The notes under the pieces: generated by a model
Told to the model about the DNA's origin: nothing
Seen by the model: only the letters and a program-made list of their open reading frames with translations
Database searches by the model: none
NCBI RefSeq assembly: GCF_006345805.1
Contig: NC_042999.1
Coordinates: forward strand, 139,624,001-139,688,000
Direction: 5' to 3'
From: Octopus sinensis
Lineage: Eukaryota
Length of the DNA: 64,000 nt
Position numbers and translations under genes: made by a program
Part shown: piece after piece, positions 11,991-57,381 of the stretch
Position numbering within the stretch: the first letter of the stretch is position 1
Layout: each line of letters begins with the position of its first letter

Positions 11991-13370
11991 TCAAGTAAGA
12001 CCATCTGTTTTATATAAACCTGTATTTTTGACATTGGTAACTTGTGTTGATGATAATGGTAATCTGTCCCCTTCTGCTGTAAAAAGTCCTACAGGATAGA
12101 CACTTTCACTGCTACCATAAGTCACATTGTTGTCAATTAACGGAGTTGTTATTGTTTGATTTAGTGGTTTAGAAGGGTCTTCTTTTATGAGTCTAGATTG
12201 AGAACACAGTTTTTCTTCACTATATGACACAGGAGATAAGTCAGAAACTGGAGAACTTTCAAATACATTAGATTTTAATTTGGGTGATGTTCCATATATC
12301 TTATTTATTGTTGCTTTGCTATTTGTGTTATCTGAAAATGGTAAGCTAAAATCTGTAGTGGATATAGCTATAGAATTCAAAGGAGTGTTTAGCGCCTGAG
12401 AACTATCAGAAACTGAACTAGATGTGCAAGCTCTTTTATTCATTTGACCATATTTATCATCAGGTCCTACAGGCTCGATTTTTACAGTGGGAAGGATAAC
12501 TGAACCAAATGGAGAGTTGCCACTGTTAGTGTCCAGAGATGCAGCCTCAAACTCTCGCTTAACGGTTCTGACTGTACCTTCTTTAAGCTGTGCTAATTCA
12601 TTCTGGGAAATCTGCTTAATATCCTCTGTAGGAACAGTTGAAACAGAAGATGGCATCTGCCTGGTATCATCAAACGCAGTGACTGTTGAAGTAAGTAGCT
12701 GACATGCTCCACTTGTTGTTGCTTTGCTATTTGTGGTATCTGAAAATGGTAAGCTAAAATCTGTAGTGGATACAGTTATAGAATTCAAAGGAGTGTTTAG
12801 TGCCTGAGAACTATCTGAAACTGAACTAGATGTGCAAGCTCTTTTATTCATTTGACCATATTTGTCATCATCAGGTCCTACAGGCTCGATTTTTACAGTG
12901 GGAAGAATAACAGAACCAAATGGAGAGTTGCCACCGTTAGTGTCCAGAGATGCAGCCTCAAACTCTTGCTTAATGGTTCTGACTGTACCTTCTTTAAGCT
13001 GTGCTAATTCATTCTGAGAAATCTCCTGCTTAATATCCTCAGTAGGAACAGCTGAAACATCAGATGGCATCTGCCTGGTATCATCAAACGCAGTGACTGT
13101 CGAAGCAAGTTGCTGATGTGCTCCACTTTGAAGATGAGCATCACACATATTTTGTAAATCTTTCATGTCTAATTGTTTTGCAATGACTTTTAGCTGTTGT
13201 AAAATATTAAGATCAAGATCTAATAGTCCAGTATACATGTATTCAGTAAAAGCCATTAAAGTTTCTGTGCTTACTTCAGGAAATTTCACTTCATAAAACT
13301 GAGAAGAGATGCATGTACTAATTACTGAGAACAGTTTTGGAGACACAGCAGACAAGACTATTTTATGGAC
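11991..13370 (-). CDS. BTB gene 1, terminal exon (C-terminal part of BTB/POZ domain plus long S/T-rich tail)
   Basis: Acceptor tttcag|GTC CAT AAA at 13370; open for 460 codons to TGA at 11991. VHKIVLSAVSPKLF...EVSTETLMAFTEYMYTGLLDL...AKQLDMKDLQNMC matches the BTB pattern (HKxVL, Y.YTG.L, A..L.M..L...C). AATAAA on minus strand at ~11950-11955. Confidence 0.9.
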   Translation of the reverse strand, partial: VHKIVLSAVSPKLFSVISTCISSQFYEVKFPEVSTETLMAFTEYMYTGLLDLDLNILQQLKVIAKQLDMKDLQNMCDAHLQSGAHQQLASTVTAFDDTRQMPSDVSAVPTEDIKQEISQNELAQLKEGTVRTIKQEFEAASLDTNGGNSPFGSVILPTVKIEPVGPDDDKYGQMNKRACTSSSVSDSSQALNTPLNSITVSTTDFSLPFSDTTNSKATTSGACQLLTSTVTAFDDTRQMPSSVSTVPTEDIKQISQNELAQLKEGTVRTVKREFEAASLDTNSGNSPFGSVILPTVKIEPVGPDDKYGQMNKRACTSSSVSDSSQALNTPLNSIAISTTDFSLPFSDNTNSKATINKIYGTSPKLKSNVFESSPVSDLSPVSYSEEKLCSQSRLIKEDPSKPLNQTITTPLIDNNVTYGSSESVYPVGLFTAEGDRLPLSSTQVTNVKNTGLYKTDGLT

Positions 13371-13848
13371 CTGAAATATAGTAAATGATAACAGTATGTT
13401 TACAGCTTGCCAACAATACATTGATAGACACTTAAGAATCATGTTCATAAAATAGAAAAATGTAAGTTTGTTTTTCCAACTCTTACAAAAGCAATTGACT
13501 ACCAAAAGTCTTAAGTCTCTGGAAGTTGATTTTAAACTTCATTCATTTCAAAGCGTTTCTTTTTCTGTAAAATATTCTATTTTATATTAGTAAACAAATG
13601 TTTCAGTAAAAGCTATTTTCAAGGATTGAATCATAAAATTTTCTGATAATAATAAAACTTAAAGCATATCAGTATTTATATATAACTTGATAAAGGCTAC
13701 ACCTACCTTTAAGAAATATAGAGGGAAGCAGAAGAAAGAATAGCTTGATATTAAGCACATTAGAAATTAAGCATAATTTTTTAATTATCATGATAATGAC
13801 ATTGGAAACAGTTGATAAATGTGAAAAAGTTTACAACTGTATACTTAC

Positions 13849-14194
13849 CATCACAGTAGACGAGCCATTGCTAATACTGGCATCACATAATTTTCTACTT
13901 CTCCACATAGATGCTAGGTTAGACATGACAGAATGTTCATGACTAGTAACTAGCAATTTTTGTTTCGGTAAATCTGTTTTTCTAATTATTGATTTAGATA
14001 CAGTTGTTTGATTTGGATCTTTCACCAGCTTTGATTTGGATGGAGTTATTTCAAATGGTGAAGTCAACACTTGAGCTGGTTTTGTAATATTTTGCGATGC
14101 TTGTGCTAAACTTGAATCTTGCTGGACTGGCGTTTTAGTAGTTAGTTGTACACATTTTGAAATCTTTGGAGTTGGTAAAGCACTGTCCATTTGC
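13849..14194 (-). CDS. BTB gene 1, exon with linker and N-terminal half of BTB (SNLASMWRSRKLCDASISNGSSTVM)
   Basis: Acceptor ttttag|G CAA ATG (phase 2); donor ATG|gtaagt (phase 0) joins in frame to VHK of the next exon; paralogous to exons in genes 2 and 3. Confidence 0.88.
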
Positions 14195-14292
14195 CTAAAA
14201 TGAAAATGTGCAATTCATTGAGAAGAAATATATATAAGAGAAAAACAATAACTCAATAGTATTGTCAAAATACCATTTTAGTCATCACATAC

Positions 14293-14366
14293 CATCTGTC
14301 ATGTGATTGTTGATTTCTTAACCTTTGATTCTTCACGTGTTGCTCCCCAATGTGCTCTACCTTGTT
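14293..14366 (-). CDS. BTB gene 1, putative small exon (NKVEHIGEQHVKNQRLRNQQSHDRW)
   Basis: Phase 0 start, phase 2 end with donor TG|gtatgt, then a 98-bp intron. Same phases and position as the 95-bp exon and 89-bp intron in gene 2. The acceptor (aaaaaaacag) is weak. Confidence 0.5.
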
Positions 14367-15178: not shown

Positions 15179-15311
15179 CTTGAGAGCTGCAAGATGAGTT
15201 TTACTCCACCATTTCTGAGCTTCTAATCTTGCCTGCCTTTGTTCTGCTGTTTCTGCCAGCAAACTTTGGCTTTGGTAAGGAATCAATGGCACTAGACGTG
15301 CTAGGATTGAG
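15179..15311 (-). CDS. BTB gene 1, putative exon with one STPR-like 23-aa unit (ETAEQRQARLEAQKWWSKTHLAA)
   Basis: Acceptor ttttcag|C, open frame SILARLVPLIPYQSQSLLAETAEQRQARLEAQKWWSKTHLAALK, donor AAG|gtagat in phase 0. AETAEQ also occurs in the gene 3 N-terminus. Confidence 0.6.
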
Positions 15312-16553: not shown

Positions 16554-19500
16554 TTATTGCAGCGCTTCTTTGTAGACGACGTTTCTTGTTTTTGCGGATT
16601 GCCGCATATGAAGAGGTTTCGCGGATCTCCAATACGTGAGCAACCAACGTAAAGTTGACCATGAGTAAAAACATCTTGGGTCAGGTTTAGTCCAACAACT
16701 TAGAGTGATTGGCCCTGAGCTTTATTTATACTCATGCCAAAACAGACTTTTATTGGAAATTGTTTGCATGTAAACTGGAATGGACTGTCAGACGGACTTA
16801 GACTGATTGGAGTTAGCAGTTTTGTCATGCCTGCAGATGGCCCGCTTAGAATGACTGTTGTGAGAATGCGAGTGCCAATATCTTTGATGATAAGTCTCGT
16901 CCCGTTGCACAGTTCTGGTGGGTCGATGTTTCGAAGCAGCATAACTGGAGTGCCAACTTTGAGTCGGAGGTCATGAGGTGGAAGTCCAGAAATTTGTAAC
17001 GTGTTGAGGAATTCGGTGGGATAGTTGACAGCATCATCAGCGTTGTTTGTAGTGTTGATGGACTTGAATGAGTGTTCGTTCCCAGGAATATGGTTGAGGA
17101 GATTTTGATTAATGGCGTCGACATTTGCATTGTGTGGGGCTAAAATGGCTCTACCTTGCAGCCAGTTGGAATCATGAAATTGAGCTTCAAGATCAGGAAA
17201 AACTACCAAAATTAAATCATCAATACTTTCAACAAAATTTCCGAAGAGAAGACTAATATGGTCTGCATCGATTGCAGTTGCAGTTCCGTTTCCAACATCG
17301 AGTAATTGTCTGCAGAATACTTCAGTATCTGCGTCCCATTGCAAATGTACTCTCATGTTGGTGGTGAGGTGAAGTTTTTCAACATGACGCCAAAGGTAAG
17401 ACGATGTGATGCATGCTTTCACTTCATCTGCTTGTGTGCCCCCAGTGATGACAGGAAGGGTTTGCCGGAAATCTCCAGCCAAAATAACTGTTGCTCCACC
17501 CATAAGTCTTGGATTTCGACGCAAGTCCTTGAGAGCTCAATCCAAAGCCTCAGAAGCCGACTTATTGCTCATTGTTGCCTCATCCCAAATAATTAGACAG
17601 CAATCGGAAAGGAGTTTACCTCTTGGCGTGCCTCGATCTATTTCGCAAGATGGATTCTCTTTCTTTGCAATATCCAAGGGAAATTTGAAGGCTGAATGTG
17701 CTGTGCGACCCCTATGCAACAAAGTTGCAGCAATTCTGCTTGATGCAACTGCCAAAGCAATTCTCCTGTCTTTTCGCAGATTTGCGAGGAGAAGGTTGAT
17801 GGCAAAAGTTTTACCTGTGCCATCAGGTGCATCCAAAAAGAAAAGCATGCCTTCATTTGAAACGGCACTGGTGAAAATTCAGTTGTATGCAAGTTGCTGT
17901 TCAGGCAAAAGTTTTGGTTCATCTCGAGCCACCATTTCAGTCAACTCTTCAATGTTATAGTCCAATTCAGAAATGTATTCTGAATCTAAAACGCCATCTC
18001 TGTAGACAGGGCTTGGAATACCGAAATGACAAACACCATCTAATCCAGCAGCTCTGAGACGTCTGTCGATATCAAGTAGAGCCTCATAGTAGATCTCATC
18101 GTTGTATTCGCGTGCATGCAGTCTTCGCAAAATATCTTCTGACATGCTGTCTTTGTGTGCCTCCCACAGTTGGAGGGGTTCGCTGACATCGCAAAATCGT
18201 AACATACTGCAAAACAATCGCCGCCTTTGTTTTGACAGTTTACAATCAGCAGCCTCAACGCCAGGTACAGATGATTGTCGTCTTCAAGAAGTCCGTGCCT
18301 CACACACACCTCCCAGTAAGTGGGACAAATTGTGCTGTCAAACATTCTGAGGTCAGCAAATGACTTGGGTCCTCTAACTTGATGCAGTAGGGTTCTCAAG
18401 AAGAAGCACTCTTGTGCACGTGGATGAACAGTGAAAAGACGTCCGATTGCATCACTTCTCTTTACACCGGGCCAATTATCGACATCTCCATTTTTCCTTC
18501 GACTATGTGATTTCTTTGACCATGTATAGTAAACTGGTACATCGTCATAGAGAAGTGTTGCAGCAAATGCATCTCAGGAGCAAAGTTTGAAGAATGCCAT
18601 AAGTTTTGTCTCCAGCAGCTGTTGAGCGACAATTTGGGCATTCCGCTCCGTGAAATAGGTGCGCTGCCCATTCTCCAAATGAACATCAATGAACTCGTAA
18701 ATGTCAAAACCGAAAATCCTCCAAGCCGCCACATTGGAAGAAATGTATCACCCCATGACATATTGCTGGATTTCGTCATTTTGATTCATGCCACCGCTGA
18801 TGCCAATCACCACCCTTGTTGATGTATTTGGATATGTATTTGATGCTTCTGACAGAGGTGCAGCTCTCAACGTTGATGTGTGCTTTGAAGATTTTTGCGA
18901 GCAGGGGGCTGTAGGGCACAACCCAGCAGTTGTCAACGAAGTAAGTGACACCGTCTCTCCTTACCTGAACTGCAATGCCACCGAAATCAGGAGCGCGCCA
19001 CCGATAAATGGGATAGCTGTGGGTTCTGGTGCAAGCTGTGCTCACGAAGTCTTTGGGATAATGCTTGCTGCATTTGTTATTCTCCATGCATGCTTTTCTG
19101 GGGTTGAGAGGAACACAAGGTCTGTGCAAAAGATTGGTGAAAACAATGTTATGAAGCTCTGGATCAACGGTGGGATCTGGAAGCTCAGCACTGATAACTA
19201 TCAATGTCTGCAGGTCTAATTTTTTCTTTGCACCAAATAAGAATATGTGCATACGGAAGGCCCCGCTTCCGCCATTCCACAATGTACATCCAGGCATTAA
19301 GAGGACTGTAGATTTTCTCCTTCTTCAGCAAGGACATCAGGAGATTAAGCTTGAGTTTGAAGACTAATTTCATCTCAGGTCTTGAGTTCAAAAACTCTGC
19401 AGCAGTTTTTAGCTCACGGACATAAGGGTGGCTGTAGTGAAGCATTGTTTGAAGCTCTGCAATGATATTGCGACTTAAAGGAGGGTTTTTGCTGCATCTA

Positions 19501-20286
19501 TGAGAAAGTTCTTGCTCATGTCCACCCATGAAGAAAACCTGCATAAATCGTGGCTCCTCTCCTGATTGTGGGAGAAGGCTCCCAATTTTGTGGTAACATT
19601 GACCATGAATTTGGAAAGTAAAAAGCTTTTCTTTGGGCCTTGTAACAGTGGTTTGAGAAGTGCTGGCAACCTCAGTGTTGTCAGTGTTTGTCCTTGTTAT
19701 TCAGCTGTCACTCACACCAAAAGACATCATCGAAAAACATGAGTTGTATCTCTATAAACACTTTCGAAACAGCTTTCCATGGTCAGAGTCACTGGTGAGG
19801 TCCTGGATTATTTTGGGAGGAGCAGCCAGTGCCTCAAGATGAACTTTGCCCCCGGAACAGCAGAGACCTGGAGTCTCCCCTCTCCACTTTTTCGCCCCGC
19901 AGTATTTGCAGACTTGATCCATCTGTCCTATAGAAACGTCGGCTCGCGCAGTCATAAGTAGGATCGTAGTTGAAACCTACCATCAACCAAAAATTTTGTT
20001 CTGGACGATGCCGTTGTTGTCTTCAACGTTGCTGGTCCTGCAAACGAATCTTCCTGGCCTCCTAATTCTCAGTCATACGGGTGAATCGATCCCTTTCGCG
20101 CTGGGCAGAAAGACGTGATTCTCTGGCAGCAGAAGTCTCGCTTCTTCGTGATTGCCTGGTGGATTAGGAGAAGGGGCAACGCTCACATGCCTCATTACTC
20201 TCTTCGATGCATGAAAGGGTCGAACTATCATTTTGTTCAGCAACAGGAAATTCCACTGATTGCGGCGTTTCCTCAGAAGGAAGACC
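16554..20286 (-). pseudogene. Decayed autonomous Helitron RepHel (N-terminal repeats, Cys cluster, Rep, PIF1-like helicase)
   Basis: Fragments in order: GFNYDPTY; SIGQMDQVCKYCGAKKWRGETPGLCCSGGKVHL; YIVEWRKRGLPYAHILIW (Rep motif II); SAELPDPTVDPEL; VDNCWVVPYSP..HINVE..SIKYISKY (Rep motif III); FFLDAPDGTGKT (Walker A); IIWDE; LAGDFRQTLPV; LCNGTRL; MSINKAQGQSL*VVGLNL..FTHGQLYVGCSR; KTRNVVYKEALQ*. Many stops and frameshifts. Confidence 0.93.
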
Positions 20287-20842
20287 CTGTAGAGACGGAT
20301 AGCATCATTCAAAATGGTATAGCTAATGATTATATGGTAAAGCCAATGTAATAGTAGTAGATTGTATTTTTGGATAGTCAAGTCTGGTATACTTCTTAAA
20401 TTAAAAAAAAAAAAAACAGAAAAATCAAGTCATAATTCGAACAAATTGTGCAATTAATTTTTTTTGATAAAGAATAAAATGTGTGACTTATAAGTAATAA
20501 TTATTTTTAGATCGACAGGAATACATTCACTGCCATGGCTTTAATGTTATGTATTAAAAAGTATAATTAAACGAAAATAAAGCAATGGCAAAATTAATGT
20601 GTTAAGTTTTAGCAATCACCTAGTATGTGTTCAATACCAAGATAAGCTGCAAATATTATGGATATTTGGTAGGCAGTCCAACAAACAGTTATTTTACTAA
20701 ACAAATTGTCCAAGAAAACGTCGTAAATATTGACACAAACTCGATTTTTCATGAATGTTTAACAGATTTGAATAATTAAGTTCTGATGTAAACATTGCAG
20801 CCGCTGTTTTTATGGCAATAATAGATTAGATGGTAGAAATAG

Positions 20843-21235
20843 GGATCTTTTCGGTTTGAACGGCAGTTTTTTAAAATAATTTCCACGTAACTAAACACTT
20901 TTAAACTTCGTATACTGGTAGAATGTGTTTATAAAACATCTTTTTCTCTTGGCTTTATTGAGAAAATTCTATAGTTTGTAAGATATTTGTTTTGTTTTTT
21001 TTTTCAATTTCTGCAATTTCAACCAATCGATGACGTCTATTCTGTGCCGTATGAATATGTCCCTCGTTTAAACAACAGATTGGGTTTATTTACATTTGTG
21101 AAGAAAACAAGATACCGCCCCCACCCTAACCCTAAAACAGATTGAAATGCAATAGATCGATACTAGGGTCATAATTATGGGTGACAATTGCATATGACAC
21201 CGCTAGAAAAACTGCCATTCAAACCAAAAAGACCC
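20843..21235. mobile_element. MITE with GG-starting TIRs and 8-bp TSD (Merlin-like by inference)
   Basis: TIR ggatcttttcggtttgaacggcagtttt / aaaactgccattcaaaccaaaaagaccc; TSD AGAAATAG at 20835-20842 and 21236-21243. Confidence 0.8.
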
Positions 21236-27306: not shown

Positions 27307-28275
27307 TCACATAAGATCATCTGCTTCATATAAACCTACATGTTTAAGATTTGTATGTTGTGTACATAATGGTACGTTGTCCCTTCCTGCTGTAAAAAGT
27401 CTTACAGGATAGACACCTTCATTACTACCAGATGTCATAATGTTCTCAATTGACTGGATAGTTGCTATACTTCGGTGTAGCATTTTAGATGCATCATTTT
27501 GTATGGAAATAGACTGGGAAGACCTTTTCTCTTCAATGCATGACACAGGAGGTAAGTCAGAAACTATAGAGCCTTCAAATACATTAGACTTTAATTTACA
27601 TGTTGGTCCATATATCACATGTGATACTGTATTGCTTGAAACTGGAGTGGATATGTAAGCCTCATTGTTCAGTTGACCATATTTCTCATTATCAAGCCCT
27701 ACAGGTTCAGTTTTCACTCTGAGAACAAAATCAGAATCATTTGAGCAGTCACCATATGTATTAGCATCCAATGAGTCAATTTCAGATTCCTGTTCAATGA
27801 CACCAGCAGTACCATTTTTAACTTGTGCTAATGCAGCCTCACATATCTCTTGTTTAACATCAATGACTTGTGTAATGAAAGATGGAGTAGATTGAGATGT
27901 AACTGATGTGATGGATGATGAAGGCAGAGATGGTTGAACTGTTGGCACTGTAATATTGGTTGGAACTGGCAGACCGGCTTGTGTCTGGTTCTGCCTAAGA
28001 TCAGTCGACGGTTGGTTTATTTTGTTTATAAGATTGTTATCACACATTTCTTCAAATTTTTTCATTTCTAATTGTTTTGCAATGATTTTTAATTGCTGTA
28101 AAATATCTGGATCAAGATCTAAATATCCATTGTACATGTATTCTGCAAATGCATTTAAAGCTTGTGTACTAACTTCTTCTGGAAAGTTTATTTGGAGAAA
28201 CTTCTGAGAGGAAATATTTGTACTAAATACTGACAATAGTTTTGGACACACAGCAGATAGAATAACTTTATGTAC
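27307..28275 (-). CDS. BTB gene 2, terminal exon
   Basis: Acceptor tttcag|GTA CAT AAA; 323 codons to TGA. VHKVILSAVCPKLL...EYMYNGYLDLD...AKQLEMKKFEEMC; tail homologous to genes 1 and 3. Confidence 0.9.
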   Translation of the reverse strand, partial: VHKVILSAVCPKLLSVFSTNISSQKFLQINFPEEVSTQALNAFAEYMYNGYLDLDPDILQQLKIIAKQLEMKKFEEMCDNNLINKINQPSTDLRQNQTQAGLPVPTNITVPTVQPSLPSSSITSVTSQSTPSFITQVIDVKQEICEAALAQVKNGTAGVIEQESEIDSLDANTYGDCSNDSDFVLRVKTEPVGLDNEKYGQLNNEAYISTPVSSNTVSHVIYGPTCKLKSNVFEGSIVSDLPPVSCIEEKRSSQSISIQNDASKMLHRSIATIQSIENIMTSGSNEGVYPVRLFTAGRDNVPLCTQHTNLKHVGLYEADDLM

Positions 28276-29302: not shown

Positions 29303-29570
29303 CATTACAGTTGATGAACCATTACCAATACTAGCATCACACAATTTTTTACTTTTCCACAGTGCTGCCAGGTTGGACATGACATGGAGCTGATGATCAG
29401 CAACAGCAAGTATTCTTTTCCTCTGATGCCAAGGCTTCCTAACACCATTTGGTTTGGGTACAGGTATCTGTGCTGACTGAGCAACATCCATACACTGTTG
29501 GACTGGCATTTGGGAAGCAATTTGAAGAGAATTTGCAATTATCTGAGATACCTGAGTGTTAATCATGTGT
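29303..29570 (-). CDS. BTB gene 2, exon with N-terminal half of BTB (SNLAALWKSKKLCDASIGNGSSTVM)
   Basis: Acceptor tttatttcag|A CAC ATG (phase 2); donor ATG|gtaagt (phase 0). Confidence 0.88.
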
Positions 29571-29659: not shown

Positions 29660-29754
29660 TTATCAGCATCAAACAGTTGATCATCAGTCTGCACCTGCTC
29701 TGTATATTGTTGCTTCATTGATTCTTCCGAATAACATTGATTTGACAATTCTGC
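29660..29754 (-). CDS. BTB gene 2, small exon (AELSNQCYSEESMKQQYTEQVQTDDQLFDADK)
   Basis: Acceptor ctttcag|GCA (phase 0), donor AA|gtatgt (phase 2), 89-bp intron, in frame with the next exon. Confidence 0.7.
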
Positions 29755-36624: not shown

Positions 36625-36769
36625 GAAAGGCTAAGAATGGCGAAAAGGAGGAAGGCGATGACTGATGAAGAGAGAAAGGAACTACTGGTCAAGAATAGGC
36701 TAAGATTCGCCAGAAAAAAGCTGGCACGACTTACTGACGAAAGGCAGGGTTTGCTGGCTAAAGACCAAA
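36625..36769 (+). repeat. 145-bp inverted copy of gene 2 exon sequence (35197-35341) with 8-bp flanking direct repeat
   Basis: One mismatch against the reverse complement of 35197-35341; TCATGAAC at 36617-36624 and 36770-36777. Confidence 0.9.
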
Positions 36770-46300: not shown

Positions 46301-46790
46301 AAAGGTAAGGCATGTTTTTACTGTACGGTTGCAGTACTGAAAGAGTGTGTTTGGAGGACGAGAATGGAAGGTTCTGTGAAAGGGTCCTTCATCTCTGCTG
46401 TCTTACTTCAGATACCATCTGAAGAGCAAGATGGGGTTGGAGAGGAAATCCCTGCCACCGAGAGAATATGAGAAACGATGGAAGGATGTGATGAGAAAGT
46501 TGGGTGTTAGTAACCCAGCTTAATCATTGCTGAAAGGAAAAGATAGTTGCTGGGCCTTATAGGCTGCCGGGTTTCGATCTTTTAAACTTTTATTCGTTTT
46601 CTTTCTTTGTTTTATTTTATTTTTAAAAAGTTCTAGTTTAAAGGGAATTAATCATTGTATAAAATATTTTTAAGTAAATTTTTAAAACGATATTCATACG
46701 AACTCATATAACATTTTTTGTTTTTGTTTGTCTTGTAATGTCCCTTTCTATGTAAGATCATTTTTTATCATAACAGTTTCGTTTTAAACT
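43352..46790 (+). mobile_element. Second Tx1/L1-like LINE, internally deleted (no RT)
   Basis: ORF1 remnant (EAHFES, TYLGRRT). ORF2 from 44767 (MIKLSCLNVRG, VGDVN, YLDRVF, TDHKLVKV) jumps at ~45450 straight to the post-RT region (LSLKGRTEV...CPRCGLDNETVQHVFVQC); about 1.6 kb is missing relative to the first LINE. Confidence 0.85.
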
Positions 46791-47031
46791 TCAAGAAAGA
46801 AAGCCTTCAAGTTTATAATGAGACATTGCTGGCATAATTTCGTTATATCTATATACCACAACATAAATACATTCGGTACTATTTAAGAAGAGCAGTCCCG
46901 GTGAGCGCACTTGCGCTAGTTAGTCGTGACCAGTTGACCCTACAACGACTACCTATCCTATAACAAATGTTCGTACAAATTCGGTTGAAAGTTATTAGAA
47001 GAACGTAAAATAACGTTTTAAGGGTATGATG

Positions 47032-47667
47032 GGATCTTTTTCTTTTGAACGGCAGTTTTCAACACAATTTCTAGTCAACTAAACACTTTTAAACTTCGTA
47101 TACTGGTAGAATGTGTCAAAATAAAACATTTTTTTCTCTTGGCTTTCTTGAGAAAATTGTAATTTGTAAGTTTAACGTAGTTTAATTTTTCGAATTTTAA
47201 CCAATCCTATGCCCTGTATTGAGCTAAAATCATTTGCTGCATCTAAAACTGAGAAAACATCCTGTCACTAACCCTAACCCTAAATTTTAGCCTTTCGTTT
47301 TTTTTTTCTTAATTGTTAAATTAATTTAAGGATAACAATTAAGGAAAAAAAAAAGAAAGCAAAAGCTCAAAACAAAAACAAAACGAATAATTTTAGACAC
47401 ACACGTAACAATTAAATTAATTTAACAATTAAGAAAAAAAAACCCAAAAGGCTAAAATTTAGGGTTAGTGACAGGATGTTGTCTCAGTTTTAGATGCAGC
47501 AAATTCGAAAAATTAAACTACGTTAAACTTACAAATTACAATTTTTTCAAGAAAGCCAAGAGAAAAAAAATGTTTTATTTTGACACATTCTATCAGTATA
47601 CGAAGTTTAAAAGTGTTTAGTTAACTAGAAATTGTGTTGAAAACTGCCGTTCAAAAGGAAAAGATCC
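47032..47667. mobile_element. Foldback MITE, related TIR family, 8-bp TSD
   Basis: Almost fully palindromic; ends GGATCTTTTC...GAAAAGATCC; TSD GTATGATG at 47024-47031 and 47668-47675. Confidence 0.85.
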
Positions 47668-48061
47668 GTATGATGAGGGTACCAAAAACAGGTAGTATGT
47701 TATTTTTAAAAAAGGATTTCGATTTCAGGAACAATGAATTGCGGTCCTGCTGGTCTTGCACATACCATTCTGTTCAATTCCAAAGTAAATATCCGGTATT
47801 TATGCTGACTTATGTATGTCCTTTTACTAGTTAAACCCCACCACCCCAATTTTTATTTACTTTTTAAAACTGAACAATTACCCTAATTTTATAGATACTT
47901 CTTTCAAAATTACCGTTTTCATCACTTTTATAGGCTGAACAATGTAAAACGTTAAAGATAGAAGCCTCGTTTAAATCTAACACAAGCTAGGTTCAATGTT
48001 GTATCTATATCTTGGTCTTGTAGTATAATACCATTCATATCTGGGATGCTTTATAAGAATA

Positions 48062-48455: not shown

Positions 48456-49849
48456 TGCTTTTTTTTTTCAGTCATAGAGTTAGATTTATGAAGGTCTTCA
48501 GTAGAAAATCCTTCGAATTCTGACTCGCTGCTTGATATAATGAAATTCGTATCCATTTTTTGTCAGAATTACAAATTTTGAAAACACAATAGGAACAAAT
48601 TTCGGAAAAAAATCTCCCATAATTCACGGAATTAAAATTACACTTCGATTTTTGTACAAAACTGTAGTTGAAGTGTTTACGAAGTATAATACGTGTTTTC
48701 ACGAATGTACTAAAGAGATTTGCTCTGATATTCTCATTTAAATATGAATAGGTAAATTCGGGCGGCTTGGTAACTATATATAAGTGTCGTCTGTTTATAC
48801 ATAAACACTGGTTCATACTGCAATTATATATACATATATATCTATATATAATATTATATAATAAAATATATACAGAGTAAAATAAAAACCAATTTACCTT
48901 TTCTGTCCGTCCGTGTGTCTTTGCAAATGTGTTGGAATGATAAGTGAGTTGAGTTTTGGCGCCTTTTTTACTAATAACAAACACACACGTGTTTGTATGT
49001 AGTTGTATGTGTATGTAGTTGTGTGTAGTTGTATATGTATGTGTATGCGTGTGTGTGAGGAATGACACACACACACTCACGCACGCACACATGTACATCA
49101 ATGCTTTCGGAGTGATATGTTAAAATATTGAGTTTTCTCGAATTTTGTCTTAATTGGTGGTAAAATTGAAAGAAATTTTTTATGGCATCACCCACTGAAG
49201 TACTCTGAAAAATCTTAGGTAAATTCTAATTGAAGAAATTGTGTGAGGAGTAATTGGTTATGTATTTATTTGTTTCTGTTTGCTGTGTTTTTTTATTTTT
49301 TGAGTAGTGGTTGAAATACTTTCAGTTTAGTCTTCCTCAAATCACTCTGTCGCTATTTACTTTCATTTTATTCGTTGCCCACTGTGTGTGTGCGTTTGCG
49401 TGTGGTGTAAACCAGACTAAGAAAAGCATTTGACACACACACCAGAATGTGAGTTTTCTGTAAATTTTGCTTAATTGGAGTTTAAATTTTAAAAACTGGA
49501 CCTGGCATGACGCGATGCATTGTACTCTCAAAAATGCTAGGTAAATTGTAATTGAAGAAATGCTATATTGTAGATTTGTATAACTCCCAAAGGGAGGCAG
49601 ATAATATCTGCCTTTTATAATAAGAGATTAAATTGACCGAAACACTTACACTTTATTGATCCTTTTTCATCTGAAAGGCAAAATTGACATTGGTGGGGTT
49701 TGAACCCAGAAAATAACTATATACCATGCCAACAAAAGCCAGGTACAGGGGCTTATCTTTGGTTAGGTATTTCTCCTGCAGTTGTCGAACCAGGAATATG
49801 GTATTAGTGGTGCTTCCACCTGGCACAAAACTGAACTACCTCTCATCTA

Positions 49850-50478
49850 AGCAGACTCTGTCCCTGATGAGATGGGCTATGACCCACCTCCGTGACCTTC
49901 GTTACCTGATCCAGCAGTTTGATACCTCTGTAGTTATTTCTATCTAGAGCATCACCTTTACCCTTGTAGTAGTTGACCATGGTGCTGCTACGCCAGTCGT
50001 TGGGTATGATTCCATCATGAACTACCTGGTTTACAATGTGGGTGACTAGGCCATAGCCTACAGCAACAGATGTTTTAAGCATCTCAGCAGTGATTTCTGA
50101 TGGGCTGGGGGCTTTTCCTGGCTTCATACCCTTAATTGCTTTATCTACTAGGGAGCTGTCTATACGGATAGCTGGTCCTTCTACTGGGTGAACATTTGGC
50201 AGGCTCTCCTCCTCCCATTCATTCTCCACATTCAGCAGTCTTTCATAATCGCTTCTCCAAGCCTCTTTCTTTTCAGAATCATTAAAAGCAAGTGCACCAT
50301 CATCCATTCGGACACATTTCTCTCCTGTGACATCACAATTTTCTCTCACACACTGTCTTGCAATCTGAAATGGCTCAGTTCTTTGGTCCTCATGTTCCTG
50401 GACACTGGCAAACTTCTTTTCTGCTTCGCTCTTGGCTATGTATACCGGCCACCCAATCTCCCTCTTGGCTGGGTGGCA
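49850..50478 (-). mobile_element. RTE LINE ORF fragment (linker to start of RT)
   Basis: KEAWRSDYERLLNVENEW...KAIKGMKPGKAPSPSEIT...KGKGDALDRNNYRGIKLL. Confidence 0.8.
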
Positions 50479-50486
50479 GGTATACA

Positions 50487-50529
<43 letters not shown>

Positions 50530-51074
50530 TTTTATGTGGCATGTAAGAGCAGCCCTGGTCAAATTGTTCAACTCATGCAAGCCTGGGCAATGGACATTAA
50601 ATGATGATGATGTGCATGTGTATATATGTATATATATATACATAGACACTTTTTTTTATGGGTCAACAAGGCTACTAATGATTTCATAGAAAGAGGGATA
50701 GCTTTTGCCTCCATTTTGGATGAGAATACACGAATTTACACAATACTGTATAGAATTTTGGGATAAATTTACAGATCATGGTTGATAACTTATAAAGAAA
50801 TCTTGTTTTCTTATAAACAGTTTGTGCAAAGGCTTTATGGATTTAGGTATTCTATAGAAAAATCCAACAATAAAGTAATCTGGTTGTTAGCTATTGAATT
50901 TGTAAAGAGATTCTTACAAAACAAAAAAAGGTTTTTTTTTCAGAGAAATCAAACAAAACAATTATTTTGGAAATTTTTAATATACAAATATAATTATTTA
51001 TCAAAATATAAATACTCAGTCAGATATATATATATATATATATATGCACAATCGAAAGATTAATTTTTATGGTG

Positions 51075-52031
51075 TCAAGTAAGGTCATTTGCTTTATATA
51101 AACTTATACTTTTGACATTGGTAACTTGTGTTGATGATAATGGTAAACTGTCCCCTCCTGCTGTAAAAAGTCCTACAGGATAGACACCTTCATTGCTACC
51201 AGAAGTCACATTGCTGTCAATTGACTGAGTTGTTATAGTTTGATTTAGTGGTTTTGAAGGGTCTTCTCTTATGGGACTGGACTGAGAACACATCTGTTCT
51301 AAAATACATGATGCAAGGGATAAGTTAGAAACTAGAGAACTTTCAAATACATTAGATTTTAATTTAGCTGTTATTCCATGTATTATATCTGTTGCTGCTT
51401 CATTTGAAACTGTAGATGTATCAAAATGTTTATTCAGGTGACCGTATTCGTTATCTTCAGGCCCTACAGGCTCGATTTTCAAACTAGGGGCCATGCAAAA
51501 ATTTTCAGAAAAGTTATTTTTTGTACTACTACTCAGTGATCCAATCTCAGATTCTTGTCTGAAGACATTAACTTTATCCTTCTTAGCCAGTGGTAATTCA
51601 GTCTCAAAAGGCTCTTGTTTAATATCAAATGCTTGTGTAGTGATGGATGGAGTAGACTGAGATGTAACTGAAATGATAGATGATGATGATGGTAGAGGTG
51701 GTTGAACTGATAGTTCGGTCTGTGTGTTGTAATGGTCACCTAAGACAGTAGATGTTGAAATATGTGGTTGAGATTCTTCATATGGAAGACAACTATCACA
51801 CAGTTGTTCAAATTCTTTCATGTCCAAACGTTTTGCAATGATTTTCAACTGATGTAAAATATCTGGATCAAGATCTAATAATCCATTGTACATGTATTCA
51901 GCAAAGGCATTTAAAGCTTGTGTACTTACTTCCTCTGGAAAGTTAATTTCAAGAAAATTGCGAGAGGGGATATTTGTACTAAATACTGACAACAGTTTTG
52001 GACACACAGCAGACAGGACAACTTTATGTAC
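51075..52031 (-). CDS. BTB gene 3, terminal exon
   Basis: Acceptor tttcag|GTA CAT AAA; 319 codons to TGA. VHKVVLSAVCPKLL...EYMYNGLLDLD...AKRLDMKEFEQLC. Confidence 0.9.
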   Translation of the reverse strand, partial: VHKVVLSAVCPKLLSVFSTNIPSRNFLEINFPEEVSTQALNAFAEYMYNGLLDLDPDILHQLKIIAKRLDMKEFEQLCDSCLPYEESQPHISTSTVLGDHYNTQTELSVQPPLPSSSSIISVTSQSTPSITTQAFDIKQEPFETELPLAKKDKVNVFRQESEIGSLSSSTKNNFSENFCMAPSLKIEPVGPEDNEYGHLNKHFDTSTVSNEAATDIIHGITAKLKSNVFESSLVSNLSLASCILEQMCSQSSPIREDPSKPLNQTITTQSIDSNVTSGSNEGVYPVGLFTAGGDSLPLSSTQVTNVKSISLYKANDLT

Positions 52032-52278
52032 CTGAAACAAAGTAAATGATAAAACATGCTAATAACTTAACTTAAATCAAGGAGTAAGTCTTTATTTCTT
52101 GTTTTTCTCCCCCAAAATATTCAATTCCAAACAGGAAAGCAATTGTCTCTAATGAAAGATTAGTAAAATTCAAAAGTTATTTTGATCTGTGTATCTTTAT
52201 TAGCAATTTGAAAAAAATTATATCAATATGATGTACAGGTAACTTTAAAAATCTTAAGAAACTGTTTGATAAATATTA

Positions 52279-55200
52279 TGTGGTTTTAGTAGTGTTATGG
52301 GCTGTGATGGAGCTATGTGGTGTTGGTGGAAGGGATTGCAGATGAGGTGGACGGAAGTAAGGCTTGCAGGGGCCGGCGGAAGAGTCACAGGGGTGTGCGT
52401 GTGAAGGAACCACGTGTGGTCAGCAAGCACATGTGGCCAGTTTGAGCAAAGATGGCAGAGAGACAAGACATGTTTAATTCATGAGAGTGACCGCTGATTT
52501 CACCGAGGTCAACAGGTAAGACCTTTTGTATTTCTTTCTCTCGTTTGCTTCTTTTTCTGTTGTCCTTTTCCTTCATCACACTACAAGCTATTTCGGTCCA
52601 TAACAAAAAAAAAAAAAAAAGAATGATGAGTGTTGTCCGTATTTTGAATGATATGATCAAACCATTTTGCAGTGACACAGATGTAGTCGCTTGGTTGAAG
52701 AAGATGAAGTTGGTGGTGAAGCTCCACGGTATAAGTGACTTATAGAGTTTTATACCGCTGTACTTGGATGGTTCGGCGTTGGCGCTGTACCTAGAAATGG
52801 AAGAGAGGGACCGACTTAGCGTGGAGAAAATAGAAATCCGTTTGATGGAGGCCTTTGCAGAGGGAATGTTCGAGGCATACGCTCGCCTGGGGAAAACAAA
52901 ATGGACTGGGGAACAGGTTGACGTATTTGCAAACGAACTCAGGAGATTGGCTAAACTGGCGGGATATGAGGGAGAATCGCTGGACCGAACGGTTAAGTTG
53001 GTGTTTGTGACTGGCTTTCCTGACCACATGTCGGTCGAGTTGCAGAAGCTGCCGAATATTCACTCGATGGTGATGGCAGACATTGTATCTCGGGCTCGCG
53101 TGCTAGTTTCGTGCTGCAGAACAACGTTGGTAGCAGCGACTTCAACAATTAAAAGTGGCCATGGAAAGAGCAGCAGAGAGGGGTCAAAGAAAGAACATGT
53201 GCGATCATTCAAAGGACAGAGTTTCCGGTGTCAGGGCCCGCACATGGTATGAGACTGCGAGTCACCCAAGCCTGAGGTCATTTGCTACTGGTGTCGAGAA
53301 ACGGGACATATAGCCAGCGAATGTTTGCGGGGAAATGGTCTGAGGGAGACTACTGCACTGGTAGTTGTCCCTTTGGATCAATAGAGGTGCGTTTATCGTC
53401 ATTACCTGTAGTCGACATTCTGGTGGAGTGGAAGATGTCGCAAGCCCTTGCGAACACGGGCTGTACAACGACCCTGATGACTCCAAAAGTGGTAGAGACG
53501 TGGAGTGCAGAAAGCAGTGTAAGTGCAGTCAACGGAAGAGAAGTACACTGTGAAGGCATTACAGATGCGCAGATTGTGGTGCAGGGAATAAGGCTGACGC
53601 TACGAGCAATTGTAGTTGGCCACTTGGTGGACGAGATTGACGTGGTGATGGGGATGGATGCAATCACCCGTTTGGGAGGTGTCACTGTTAACAAGGCCAG
53701 TGTAACGTTCAGGTTTGCGGGGAACCCATGTATGGGCGAGACTGTGCACTGATGAGAACCATGAAGAAAAGTATGCTGCACACGCCATTGAAGACCAGGA
53801 TTTTCGGGCTGTTTTCGATGGCCAGAGGTGGACAGTGGAGTGGCACTGGAAGGGAGAGCCCCCGACATTAAAAAATAAAGTGGGCTGCTATCAGCATACC
53901 CTAAAAGGAGATGCCAGAAGTGAGTTTGAGGGGGATGTGGAGCAGTGGATTAAGGAGGGCATACTGATCCCTTGGGATCAAGAAGAGAGCAGAGTCCTGC
54001 CACTGATGGCGGTGGTACAGACCACAAAGCATAAGGTCAGGCCAGTGCTTGACTTCCGAGAGCTGAACAACCACGTATCATGTCATACAGGCGGCGAGGC
54101 CACAGATGTCTGCAGAGACACCTTGCGAGTGTGGAGACAGATGACAGGGGCCTCCACGATCGTCGATTTGAAGTCGGCATACTTGCAGGTACATGTGGCT
54201 GAGAAACTGTGGAAGTATCAGCTTGTCAGGTATAAGGGCCGGACATACTGTCTGATCAGGTTGGGGTTCGAGCTGAATTCAGCGCCAAAAATCATGGCAA
54301 CAATTCTCAAGGCCATCCTGGGAAAGGTGGACAGAGTTAAAAAGGCCACCAATTCGTACATTAATGACATTCTGGTGGATGAAACTGTAATGCCAGCAGC
54401 GGAGGTCATAGGCCACTTGAAGAATATGGGACTGATCGCCAAGCTACCAGAGGCAATAGAGGAAGGTGCTGCACTGAGCCTCAAGCTATGGAGAGATAAG
54501 GCCGGCACATTGGTGTTCCAGCGAGGGAACGAGATCCTCGAACTGAGTGCCAGCATGAGTAGACAGGATCTGTTCTTGGTGTGTGGGAAGCTGGTGGGAC
54601 ACTACCCGATTGCAGGATGGCTCCGGACAACATGTAGCTTCATCAAGAGACGAGCCGAAGGAGTGAAGTGGAACGATAGAGTGGGGGAGAAGACGACCGA
54701 CATGATACAGGAAGTCTTGATCAGAGTGAGAGCAGAGGATCCAGTGAGGGGCAGTTGGTATGTTCCCAAATCAAAGAGTGGGATTGTATGGTGTGATGCC
54801 AGTAGCATCGCAATAGGGGTTGTCTTGGAAGTGGGAGGCGTCATGGTGGAAGATGCAGCCTGGCTCAGGAAGACGGATGACTGCAATTATACCAATGTGG
54901 CGGAGTTGGATGCTGTGTTGAAGGGAGTGAACCTAGCCTTGAAGTGGGGGCTGCACACCATAGAAATCAGGACTGATTTGGCCACTGTACTTGGTTGGGT
55001 GACAGCAGTCATCACCATTGAGCGGAGGGTGCGAACCAAAGGGGCCGCAGAGATGCTGGTAAAGCGTAAACTAACCACTGAGTTCAATCTGTAGCTGATC
55101 TTTGTGCCTTCCGAGAACAAGGCAGACGTCCTGACCAGGGTAAAGCGAGTCTGGTTGCAGGTGCCAGAGGATGCAGAGCAGGCTGTGGCCGCAGTATGCC

Positions 55201-56483
55201 ATCTGAGTGACTTGGAGTTGAGGAGATTGCATACCATGCATCACATGGGGGTGGACAGGATGTTGTTCCTAGCTAGGAAAGTTGACTCTGATGTAACAAG
55301 ATGGAGCGTGGTTAGCAGCTGTGACAGGTGGCAGTCCATCGACTCTGCTCCGGGCGAACATGAGGCAGGAAGTATTCCAGTGGATCACGACTGGCGGTGG
55401 ACATAACACACTACTGGCAGGGGACATACCTCTCAATGGTTGACTGCGGACCGGGGCGGTTGGCCATATGGAGGAGATGAAGACAGGGACCGCAGAGGAA
55501 ATTGTGAAAGTATTAAATGAGATATTCCTGGAACGAGACCCCGTGGATGAACTGCTTCTGGATAATGGCACTGCATTTCGCTTGGAGGTGCTGAAAGAAA
55601 TGCTTGATGGGTGGCAGGTGAACCCCTTCATCAGGATGGCATACCGGCTGAGTGGAAATGGGGTGGTGGAAAGGCATCATCGTACCATCAAGACCATGGC
55701 AGAGAGGGGCCACATTTCACCAATCGAGGCTGTATTTTGGTACAATATGTCGCCCAAGTCAGGACAGGCTGAGGAGTTGGTGCCACACGGAAATATTCAG
55801 GTACGAGTGGAGGCATCCATGTACTGCATCAATGTGACCCGGAACAGAGGAAGAGCATGCCTTTGTGCAGGTCGGAGAAGAAGTTTGGGTAAAACCCCCA
55901 AACGTATGGTGTACATCACGATGGGGAAAGGGAATAACCTCCATCAATTCGAAGAACAACGTCTCTGTCAATGGTGTGCCACGCTACATTTTGGATGTAC
56001 GGAAGATTGTCCATGCCTCAGTAGGCAAGAAGATGAAGCAAGCAGCAGCATGCCAGGAACTCAGGCTAGTCCCGGGGTCGCACGGTGACCACAGAGGGAG
56101 CGGCACCCTCCTCCCTGGTTGGCTGATTATGAAACCAGTTAAGGTGTGAGTTTGGGAGCGAGGAGTGAGTGGGAAAGCCAGTTGTAGGGGGCATGTGGTG
56201 TTAGTAGTGTTATGGGCTGTGATGGAGCTATGTGGTGTTGGTGGAGGGGATTGCAAATGAGGTGGACAGAGGTAAGGCTTGCAGGGGCCGGCAGAAGAGT
56301 CACAGGGGCATGCATGGGCAGGAAGCATGTGTGGCCAGTTTGAGCAAAGACAGCAGAGAGACAAGACGTGTTTAATTCGTGAGAGTGACTGCTGATTTCG
56401 CCAAGGTCAACAGGTAAGGCCTTTTGTATTTTTTTCTCCTGTTTGCTTCTTTTTCTGTTGCCCTTATCCTCCATCACACTACA
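52279..56483 (+). mobile_element. Full-length decayed Ty3/Gypsy LTR retrotransposon
   Basis: LTRs 52279-52585 and 56194-56483 (TG...CA, roughly 90% identical by eye); 5-bp TSD TATTA at 52274-52278 and 56484-56488; purine-rich PPT before the 3' LTR. Gag with CYWCRETGHIASEC knuckle, degenerate protease (ALANTG), RT (DLKSAYLQ, YIND), RNase H (WCDAS), integrase (SGNGVVER) in RT-RH-IN order. Confidence 0.93.
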
Positions 56484-56931
56484 TATTATAAAACACACTG
56501 AGAAAGAGAAACTTGTGTTACTGGACACTTGGAACTAACATATTTTTTATGGCATATAAGATGTACTTTTTTACCAAAAAAAAAATGTTTCAAAAAGTTG
56601 GGCCTCCCATAAGCTTGTATTTTCTCGTATGTTTTATTACTGTAATCATGTAGAATATTTTCACTAGCATGATTCCTGAATTTCGGTTGAGTTGCACTGC
56701 TAACTTACTTTTTATATACAGTGATGTTTTCTGCTATAGCTAAAATATTTCTCTAATCTTTTGTAACATATACTAGATTACTTTAAATATTACATGCTTT
56801 TATGCACTAAAACTCTTTTTCTTGAATATGCACTATGGAAATTGTGGGGGGCATCTATTTGTTCTATCAAGTGCAGCAACTATGTTGGAGGCATTTCTAA
56901 ATACTAAAGTTTTAAAAAGCAATATACTTAC

Positions 56932-57381
56932 CATCACAGCAGATGAACCGTTACTAATACTAGCATCACACAGTTTTCTATTCCTCCACAACGAAGCAAT
57001 GTTAGACATCACATGGCGCTGATAATTAGCAATTACAAATATCTGTTTCCGTGGAGTTTTTCCCACAGAACGGCGGGCTTGTGTTTGTTCTGCGGTTTCA
57101 GCTGCCCTTGCGTTGGCTGTGGCAGCGGCATCTAGAGAATGGCGGGCCTGTTTTTGTTTTGCAGTTTTGGCTGCCCTTGCATTGGCCATGGCAGCGGCAT
57201 TTCGTGAACGGCGGGCCTGTGTTTGTTCTGCGGTTTCAGCTGCCCTTGCGTTGGCCAAGGCAGCGGCATTCAGAGCTAATCGAGTAGCTCTGTCTTGGAG
57301 TGCCTCTTTGGCCCTTTTGGCCCTATGAGCCTCTGCACCAGCCGTCCTTCTTCCAATGCGGACCCTCTTCTTTGGGGGCAT
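56932..57381 (-). CDS. BTB gene 3, first coding exon: basic N-terminus, about 3.5 23-aa repeats, then N-terminal half of BTB
   Basis: aaaATG start; MPPKKRVRIGRRT...; 69-bp DNA repeat at 57071/57140/57209; ends SNIASLWRNRKLCDASISNGSSAVM|gtaagt in phase 0, in frame with the 52031 exon (468-aa product). Confidence 0.88.

Follow-up and report, generated by a model that had tools for sequence, protein, structure and literature searches.

What stands in front of the BTB domain in three neighbouring octopus genes, and where did it come from? The genes lie in a 64-kb stretch of Octopus sinensis nuclear DNA (the window, to which all coordinates refer), which is AT-rich (GC content 38.5%). The spliced model of the second gene equals RefSeq XP_029634347.1 at every residue. 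Repeats of 23 residues are encoded upstream of the BTB of genes 1, 2 and 3, numbered here in the order of their coordinates. Sequence comparison indicates that they are divergent STPR-type repeats, homologous to the STPR family yet below its curated threshold. Proteins of the family to which the genes belong have at the N-terminus a DNA-binding module that varies, followed by a Q/S-rich linker, a BTB of the long form (BCL6/ZBTB/KLHL type) and ~230 residues of disordered tail in which short motifs are conserved.

The three genes are paralogues, arranged in tandem and all on the minus strand. Each passes the Pfam threshold for BTB (E-values of 7e-11, 2e-12 and 2e-12; PF00651 scores of 42.8–47.6 bits against a cut-off of 20.5). 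In all three, the BTB is split at the identical codon boundary (...NGSS(A/T)VM / VHK(V/I)(V/I)LSAV...) by a phase-0 GT..AG intron, with junctions at 13849/13370, 29303/28275 and 56932/52031. The second BTB half runs on within one exon into the tail, and the C-terminal tails are homologous among the three genes. A preliminary description of this DNA, made from its letters, had proposed co-oriented BTB paralogues with a common phase-0 BTB intron and tail. All of these elements are seen, and the five junctions it put forward are all canonical GT..AG.

The same description had noted a reversed domain order, with a DNA-binding-type module first and the BTB second, and this layout is real. The ZBTB/POK arrangement of an N-terminal BTB and C-terminal C2H2 fingers is not what these genes have: the BTB is internal (residues 112–231 of gene 3), and Pfam finds no C2H2 in the three genes. 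Pfam likewise finds no Rep or PIF1 in them; such domains occur only in a separate Helitron at 16700–20400. A six-frame scan of the 64 kb with a profile hidden Markov model (HMM) of the repeat unit places the 23-residue repeats at four sites only: the gene 2 exon (35536–35132), gene 3 (57381–57067), gene 1 (~15256–15179) and an inverted copy of part of the gene 2 exon (36622–36776). The repeats upstream of the BTB are real and not a product of chance.

In gene 2, the repeats occupy an alternative first exon (35132–35536, minus strand; ATG at 35536, 135 codons, phase-0 donor after 35132). It encodes four strong units and one weak unit of the STPR type (MS.EER...), in agreement with the four to five units in a phase-compatible exon claimed earlier; at the DNA level, three 69-nucleotide (nt) copies are 68–71% alike. 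The exon is followed on the same strand by a linker exon (29660–29754), an exon with further linker and the first BTB half (29303–29570) and a last exon with the second BTB half, tail and stop codon (27307–28275). Joined at 35132/29754 and 29660/29570, as had been proposed, the model is exactly XP_029634347.1 (P0014, LOC115209901 isoform X4). The same architecture is annotated in O. vulgaris (P0012) and in O. bimaculoides (P0101, LOC106877744 isoform X1, once named ‘NST1-like’). Compared with its O. bimaculoides counterpart (locus L002, 7005–7409), the STPR exon has 135 codons in each species, no indel, and 94.6% nucleotide and 88% amino acid identity. STPR and non-STPR first exons are both annotated for gene 2. 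The linker exon also serves as the acceptor exon of RefSeq read-through isoforms, and the isoforms that enter at 29754 begin in gene 3 or in a gene upstream of the window.

Gene 3 needs no splice to link its array with the first BTB half, because one exon holds both. Exon 1 (56932–57381, minus strand; ATG at 57381, donor after 56932) carries the STPR-type array at 57381–57067 and the first BTB half at 57066–56932, and exon 2 (51075–52031, minus strand) carries the second BTB half, the disordered tail and the stop codon. The array consists of a lead (MPPKKRVRIG...) and 3.5 units of 23 residues, which bears out the earlier count of about 3.5 units in the BTB exon. Tandem Repeats Finder (TRF) reports a 69-nt period at 57067–57275 with 3.0 copies and 82% matches. 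Exon 1 is identical to residues 1–150 of RefSeq P0103 (isoform X3). The whole model differs from O. vulgaris P0001 at three residues in all, with zero differences among the 318 residues encoded by exon 2. The proposed junction 56932/52031 is annotated in O. vulgaris (P0001), but O. sinensis RefSeq P0103 splices the same donor to the gene 2 exon at 29754.

The origin of gene 3 can be read from a comparison with O. bimaculoides, where just one gene, LOC106877741 (locus L003), precedes the gene 2 orthologue on its upstream side. Window positions 63453–60414 align with the 3' flank of that gene (L003 20535–22907), and the following 3.3 kb (60414–57069) are without a counterpart in L003. Homology to L003 resumes exactly at 57068 (L003 18070), midway through the linker/BTB exon (...S / V(G/E)K(T/N)PRKQIF). 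From there it spans the intron, into which a long terminal repeat (LTR) element has inserted, and the last exon, ending 590 nt beyond the stop codon (52279–50550 corresponds to L003 18631–20414). The GC content is 57% in the 314 nt of STPR-coding sequence next to the breakpoint, 40% in the remainder of the exon and 33% in the upstream DNA. Together, the mid-exon breakpoint, the step in GC content and the L003 alignment mark gene 3 as a young, lineage-specific duplicate of part of a gene. The copy retains introns, begins within an exon and is joined in frame to a foreign segment with an ATG and STPR units. Gene 3 would have formed after the split from the O. bimaculoides lineage, the duplicated part coming from the upstream gene. 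One possible mechanism is that a gene fragment was captured in the manner of Helitrons. We rejected a simple tandem duplication with the 3' flank included, since the flank is not repeated after gene 3. No other single observation argues as strongly for the recent recruitment of a mobile STPR module as this fusion of a partial duplicate with a foreign segment.

Gene 1 has mostly lost its repeats. Its linker exon (14293–14366), the exon with linker and first BTB half (13849–14194) and the last exon with second BTB half and tail (11991–13370) are all on the minus strand. Upstream of them, on the same strand, lies a relic of an STPR exon (15179–15256) with ~1.3 units (...AETAEQRQARLEAQKWWSKTHLAALK) and the ancestral donor kept. 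The single unit, ETAEQRQARLEAQKWWSKTHLAA, is at ~15247–15179. Homology to the STPR exon of O. bimaculoides (locus L001, 14614–14763) is found only from 15256 on; the lead and the first unit are lost. In the second half of the remaining unit, basic residues are lost as well (QKQRT.. to QKWWS..). The O. bimaculoides orthologue (P0016) has a THAP domain, then ~1.4 STPR units, then the BTB. The O. sinensis RefSeq model (P0015) omits the 15256–15179 exon and uses instead two 5' coding exons on the minus strand, at 21829–21749 (MPNRKRSNLSDKRNRTRKMQRRKARAQ) and 21503–21405. The preliminary description was right that gene 1 has at least one unit, but the unit belongs to a 5'-truncated relic that this model bypasses.

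The 5' region of gene 1 has been rearranged. A 7.1-kb segment that includes the Helitron (22339–15256) stands in place of a 5.1-kb segment of O. bimaculoides, which contains the 5' half of the STPR exon together with the THAP exon and a small one. The two RefSeq 5' exons lie within the 7.1 kb, which are without an O. bimaculoides counterpart, and O. sinensis gene 1 appears to have lost the THAP module and gained two new 5' exons. The idea that exon 21829–21749 is part of the old STPR exon, split by the Helitron, is unsupported, as the exon has no nucleotide homology to that of O. bimaculoides. In O. bimaculoides, a C-to-T change at L001 14740–14770 (GGCAGGCAAG to GGCAGGTAAG) in the second STPR unit makes the donor used by the annotated model and shortens the unit; the ancestral donor, ~50 nt downstream, is intact in both species. 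The last exon of O. sinensis gene 1 holds an in-frame tandem duplication of ~411 nt (137 codons; 12305–12714 and 12713–13128, 91–96% identity), part of which RefSeq P0015 removes by splicing.

The three genes are members of a larger cephalopod family, which the preliminary description overlooked. A search with the full gene 3 protein returns matches solely from cephalopods, including Octopus species, Argonauta and Acanthosepion, and the BTB family is known so far from this group only. BTB is found in 38 of 39 homologues. The modules that precede it are THAP (four proteins), FLYWCH (three), CENP-B_N with HTH_Tnp_Tc5 (two), a ZSWIM3_N/FAR1-like domain (one) and THAP with C2H2 (one); the position is N-terminal in every case. 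At least 18 isoforms of the O. bimaculoides gene LOC106877732 have one and the same linker, BTB and tail and differ only in an N-terminal THAP, FLYWCH or CENP-B module.

Of 48 family proteins from three Octopus species, 17 have STPR-type units that score above 5 bits, and these always precede the BTB. At least five types of STPR exon can be told apart by how they begin: MSRKRHEMSAEERE..., MRPKRSSLSSLTKEARRAREKRKRETTEERQ..., MNEEERELYLQNRR..., MMPRSRSTSVEQRR... and MPPKKRVRIG.... Between paralogue pairs of O. bimaculoides and O. vulgaris or O. sinensis, identity is 87–90% in the STPR region, 89–93% in the BTB and 81–83% in the tail. Some annotated isoforms combine paralogues. Isoforms X1, X2, X3 and X5 of LOC115209901 start within paralogues that lie upstream and continue at 29754 in the gene 2 exon, which represents either read-through splicing or chimeric models. 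Isoforms P0010, P0103, P0104 and P0105 are predicted to have half a BTB followed by a whole one.

Are the repeats part of the proteins at all? The alternative that survives best is that the STPR exons are functionless exonised transposon fragments or prediction chimeras, and that the real proteins consist of BTB and tail and start downstream. Several observations favour it and weigh against a coding role for the repeats. The gene models are predictions based on annotation and conservation. STPR-less isoforms of the same genes are annotated at the same loci (P0013, P0100, P0102, P0107 and P0108). The ratio of non-synonymous to synonymous rates (dN/dS) of the gene 2 STPR exon against O. bimaculoides is 0.65 (6 synonymous and 16 non-synonymous changes), which alone is not significantly below 1 and is not below that of the disordered tail (0.64; linker 0.60). 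The gene 1 STPR exon has decayed. Gene 3 is very young and sits amid transposon-rich DNA, and its three differences from O. vulgaris are all located in the STPR part. On the splice partner of gene 3 exon 1, the O. vulgaris annotation and RefSeq disagree: O. sinensis RefSeq joins this exon to gene 2 and not to gene 3 exon 2.

We nevertheless consider this alternative unlikely. The 135 codons of the gene 2 exon have stayed open without an indel between O. sinensis and O. bimaculoides, and many of the substitutions keep the charge (K/R). The five or more types of STPR first exon are in frame in paralogues of three species, where their cross-species identity equals that of the BTB. In gene 3, array and BTB share one exon and one frame, so any translated transcript with this exon encodes the array. 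Finally, other family members have an intact THAP, FLYWCH or CENP-B at the same position, which suggests that a DNA-binding module is the rule there.

If the repeats are translated, are they STPR? According to Yu et al. (2016; PMC4856987), STPR units are strictly 23 residues long, occur as three or more repeats (usually four), are basic and carry Glu1, Thr/Ser2 and Arg9. The octopus repeats have the 23-residue length, as seen from the 69-nt period and the in-register matches of the unit HMM. Genes 2 and 3 have enough repeats; the ~1.3 units of gene 1 alone are too few. At the level of residues, the gene 1 unit has E1, T2, R6, R9 and L10. In gene 3, units 2 and 4 have all of E1, T2 and R9, and units 1 and 3 have some of them. 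The gene 2 units have Ser or Thr at position 2 and Arg at position 6 in four of four and are very basic.

For a database search, we built a profile (A2) from a gapless in-register alignment of overlapping three-unit pieces of the gene 2 and gene 3 arrays; it replaced a MAFFT alignment of the two whole arrays (A1), which was out of register. An exhaustive search of 1.84e9 representative proteins with A2 (E ≤ 1e-3) retrieves 30 proteins. Two are octopus members of the family (P0012 and P0001). Among the other 28, 22 pass the Pfam STPRs threshold (best 4.9e-33) and none has a BTB. In single searches with the database size set to the whole library, the N-termini of gene 3 and gene 2 match P0040, a hookworm protein named ‘STPR domain-containing’ in UniProt, at 9.7e-13 and 5.4e-7. 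P0040 in turn matches the STPR–DNA chain of FMBP-1 (PDB 5d23) in register at 9e-4. The claim of STPR-like repeats in the preliminary description is upheld by these results. A word-indexed search with the gene 2 repeat exon alone gave 41 candidates, none significant, and also missed the exon's own RefSeq protein; this null is probably a low-complexity effect of the index.

A second comparison used STPR units from outside the cephalopods. The consensus of 145 foreign units is ETPEQREARLEKNRARMAASRAA. An HMM of non-cephalopod units scores the three octopus N-termini 9.3, 8.4 and 6.9 standard deviations (SD) above composition-matched shuffles, and an unrelated charged linker is at chance level.

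Part of the evidence runs against assignment to STPR. The family's Pfam model (PF21107) has a gathering threshold of 27 bits. The gene 3 N-terminus reaches 17.5 bits (E = 0.0057, covering positions 1–74 of the 74-position model), and that of gene 2 has no match to this model up to E = 10 and nothing meaningful among other Pfam families. The gene 3 units are Ala-rich and moderately basic, with ~4 basic residues each. In gene 2, Met replaces Glu1 in four of four units and Arg9 is present in one of four. A2 has no match among PDB sequences even at E = 10, the FMBP-1 chain included, so the link between the octopus repeats and FMBP-1 goes through P0040 only.

These points could mean that the repeats are generic charged helices or coiled coils, acting as spacers or in oligomerisation, with a likeness to STPR that is compositional. 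Besides the sub-threshold scores and the poorly kept Glu1 and Arg9 of gene 2, the automatic name of the gene 2 N-terminus (‘stress response protein NST1-like’) and an AlphaFold2 prediction of one long helix would fit. We regard this explanation as very unlikely. The period is exactly 23, which is no multiple of a heptad. The shuffles hold composition constant, and the octopus N-termini still score 7–9 SD above them; among 1.84e9 sequences, A2 yields almost only genuine STPR proteins and not coiled-coil proteins. STPRs is the sole Pfam family for the gene 3 N-terminus searched alone, and the STPR core, ET.EQR.ARL, is seen in the gene 1 unit and in units of paralogues.

Where would such modules come from? 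STPRs are among the domains stably carried by Helitron-like elements (HELIANO; PMC11417382). Two Helitron proteins retrieved here have the array at the N-terminus: P0046 (2069 aa) has the order STPRs, DUF6570, OTU, Helitron_like_N, PIF1, and P0056 from Branchiostoma (1905 aa) has STPRs, DUF6570, Helitron_like_N, PIF1, endonuclease. A protein of the nematode Ancylostoma (P0044) begins with MPPKRK... and STPR units and continues with a segment akin to the Helitron of the window (53% identity over 72 aa, 1.6e-16). A start of the form MPPK(K/R)... is common to P0040, P0041, P0044 and gene 3 (MPPKKRVRIG...). The likeness to the N-terminus of a Helitron RepHel protein, claimed in the preliminary description, is therefore borne out by P0046 and P0056 and by the published survey. 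For gene 3, a transposon source is suggested by the MPPKKR start, the Helitron relatives, the GC-rich segment and the position of the breakpoint at the module boundary.

A Helitron origin of the octopus STPR modules is plausible on these grounds. As to the further claim of a host–transposon fusion, the resemblance is documented, but a Helitron rather than a host STPR gene as the source is not established. The direction of transfer is not proven, because STPR also occurs in host factors, no octopus Helitron array was found and the remnants in the window are non-significant. STPR arrays are also found alongside C2H2 or THAP domains (P0043, P0053). A search with the Rep open reading frame (ORF) of the window, which did not extend to the octopus genome at the DNA level, gave 16 short fragments, none of them Octopus by name, and no octopus Helitron with an intact STPR array. 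Candidate STPR remnants in the window Helitron (20139–20002) show E1, T2, R6, R9 and L10 by eye, and a second unit in register with two stop codons; 293 of 1000 shuffles score as high, and the remnants are no evidence. Both of these results count against a Helitron source. The octopus STPR exon types score lower against one another than against foreign canonical arrays, which fits independent captures and equally an effect of near-consensus targets; we made no use of it.

What might the proteins do? With the family alignment as input, AlphaFold2 predicts a helix for residues 14–84 of gene 3 (pLDDT 62–84), a confident BTB at 112–231 (pLDDT ~90), including an N-terminal strand and helix, and disorder in the tail (pLDDT <50 over nearly all of 236–468). 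An N-terminal strand and helix are typical of dimeric long-form BTBs. Foldseek matches the BTB to BCL6, NS1-BP, KEAP1, BACH1/2, LRF, PATZ1 and Miz-1 (TM 0.72–0.80; E ~1e-7 for BCL6, NS1-BP, KEAP1 and Miz-1), and sequence searches match it to NS1-BP, BCL6, ZBTB17 and SLX4. A K-x-E-P motif in the tail (VKIEP/VKTEP, gene 3 residues ~335–338) is nearly invariant in 39 family members, and motifs of the type IKQE recur in the tail. Both resemble SUMO-acceptor consensus sites, and the former may be a SUMO-type site.

The gene structures, the identity of the domains, the kinship of the repeats with STPR proteins, the conservation between species and the gene 3 breakpoint are all observed; DNA binding, dimerisation, a regulatory role and a Helitron source are what we infer. 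In FMBP-1, STPR helices lie along the DNA major groove at ~4 bp per helix, with a preference for AT-rich sequence (PMC4856987). The reading that we favour, and consider probable, is that the products are DNA-binding regulators in which the STPR array contacts DNA, the BTB dimerises and the tail interacts or is modified. The STPR helices would sit in the major groove, ~4 bp each and with an AT-rich preference, as those of FMBP-1 do. BTB homodimers, or heterodimers among paralogues, would present two arrays together, and the tail would recruit partners or be modified, making the products sequence- or shape-selective regulators of chromatin or transcription. The STPR modules would be of the kind carried by Helitrons; gene 2 has its module as an alternative first exon, gene 3 as an in-frame part of the BTB exon, and gene 1 has lost most of it.

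Least likely of all is that the proteins are DNA-tethered CUL3 substrate adaptors built like MATH-BTB adaptors such as SPOP, with the recognition module first and the BTB second: the domain order is alike, the best PDB sequence match is NS1-BP (a KLHL-type BTB) and KEAP1 is among the top structural matches, but Pfam finds no BACK or 3-box after the BTB, the post-BTB region is predicted to be disordered, and the transcription-factor BTBs of BCL6, Miz-1, LRF, BACH and PATZ1 match equally well.

In a broader and more tentative proposal, the cluster would be a cephalopod counterpart, run from the 5' end, of mod(mdg4)/lola or of a protocadherin variable-exon locus. STPR, THAP, FLYWCH, CENP-B/Tc5 and FAR1-like first exons, each with its own promoter, would be combined with BTB bodies. 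Alternative promoters and splicing across paralogues would do the combining, as isoforms X1–X5 of LOC115209901 suggest. BTB heterodimerisation would multiply the DNA-binding specificities, and the recruitment of Helitron-borne STPRs would be ongoing, with gene 3 as an example. We judge this proposal rather unlikely.

The window is crowded with transposons, among them the Helitron, LINE fragments and an LTR-type element. The degenerate Helitron (~16700–20400, minus strand; Rep and PIF1 helicase, with Helitron_like_N at 1e-9 and PIF1 at 9e-20) lies in sense orientation within the long 5' intron of gene 1. The LTR-type retroelement (52278–56483, plus strand) occupies most of the BTB intron of gene 3 in antisense orientation. 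Its direct repeats, at ~52278–52585 and ~56193–56483, are ~90% alike, it matches the RNase H-like RVT_3 and DUF7047, and it is missing from the corresponding intron of O. bimaculoides. Between genes 3 and 2 there are LINE-type fragments on the plus strand (39367–42657 and 44882–46471; AP endonuclease, RVT_1) and a reverse transcriptase-like ORF without a Pfam match on the minus strand (49843–50649). This intergenic stretch is ~13.5 kb longer in O. sinensis than in O. bimaculoides.

Other repeats are dispersed. At ~6500–7800, a sequence that is also dispersed in O. bimaculoides loci (in L001 at ~7838–8086, 20760–20935 and 26423–26668) is present three times in tandem, with a period of ~462 nt; it looks like a tandemly amplified interspersed repeat. 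A 400-nt interspersed repeat occurs in the same orientation upstream of the gene 3 ATG (59277–59680) and between the new 5' exons of gene 1 and the Helitron (20843–21235), with 88% identity between the two. It has more partial copies near 47028–47668 and 5685–5940; it is widespread and therefore not specific evidence of anything.

The stretch at 36622–36776 (plus strand), which repeats a portion of the gene 2 STPR exon in inverted orientation, is 155 nt long, 97% complementary to 35190–35344 and 1.3 kb upstream of the exon. It is missing at the orthologous site in O. bimaculoides. If copy and exon were transcribed together, for instance in read-through transcripts that begin in upstream paralogues, one could speculate that they form a long double-stranded RNA stem over coding sequence. 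Such a stem might then be a substrate for editing by ADAR, in an animal known for heavy RNA editing.

The ingredients are already known: BTB factors and STPR domains, STPRs carried by Helitrons, and DNA-binding domains derived from transposons. It is also on record that most THAP and CENPB factors of Octopus have a BTB (Mukherjee and Moroz, 2023; PMC10027918). In the literature, we found no paper on STPR with BTB in the present sense, nor on this cluster. The preliminary description had suggested an undescribed STPR-BTB family. It is new in that no description was found, but RefSeq models of the proteins exist, and THAP-BTB and CENPB-BTB proteins of Octopus are in print. The current labels of family proteins (‘uncharacterized’, ‘NST1-like’, ‘Ken-like’ and ‘ZBTB11’) all mislead.

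A lineage-restricted family that places transposon-type modules before a BTB, diversified by first exons and duplication, would, if true, be a new way to build regulators, in animals known for having greatly expanded other families of regulatory genes. The exact breakpoint of gene 3 offers rare material on the birth of host–transposon fusion genes. The family could, in addition, be relevant to genome defence if its STPR arrays recognise DNA that is AT-rich or related to Helitrons.

How does the octopus family compare with known systems? Fusions of KRAB with transposases join a transposon-borne DNA-binding module to a host effector domain. The octopus fusion differs in that the module is an accessory DNA-binding repeat with no transposase domain, and its transposon origin is putative. 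FMBP-1 of Bombyx mori and human ZNF821 (PDB 5d23, 5d2q and 5d2s) share with the octopus proteins basic helical units of 23 residues and, in several, the core ET.EQR.ARL. They are without a BTB, ZNF821 combining STPR with C2H2 fingers, and the octopus units have diverged, with Met1 in gene 2 and an abundance of Ala in gene 3, and score below threshold. Helitron/Helentron RepHel proteins (P0046, P0056) have the array at the very N-terminus, as the octopus proteins do, and an ORF start of MPPK(K/R), as in gene 3. Unlike them, the octopus genes have no Rep or helicase, contain introns and lie in a syntenic host gene cluster.

A parallel in organisation is Drosophila mod(mdg4)/lola, where one BTB body is combined with alternative DNA-binding modules, as in octopus LOC106877732. 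The modules of mod(mdg4) are FLYWCH, which is one among several in the octopus family. In the fly genes the variable exons lie 3' of an N-terminal BTB and are partly trans-spliced, whereas the octopus variable exons are 5' (alternative first exons or promoters). Octopus diversity also comes from tandem gene duplication, and a BTB of the arthropod TTK type is not shown. ZBTB/POK proteins (BCL6, Miz-1, LRF, PATZ1) have the same long-form dimeric BTB fold (TM 0.72–0.80), but in the three octopus genes the order is reversed, a C2H2 array is absent and the tail is disordered. The THAP-BTB and CENPB-BTB proteins of Octopus in PMC10027918 are the same gene family; that paper treats the BTB itself as transposon-derived and makes no mention of STPR, the tandem cluster or alternative 5' exons.

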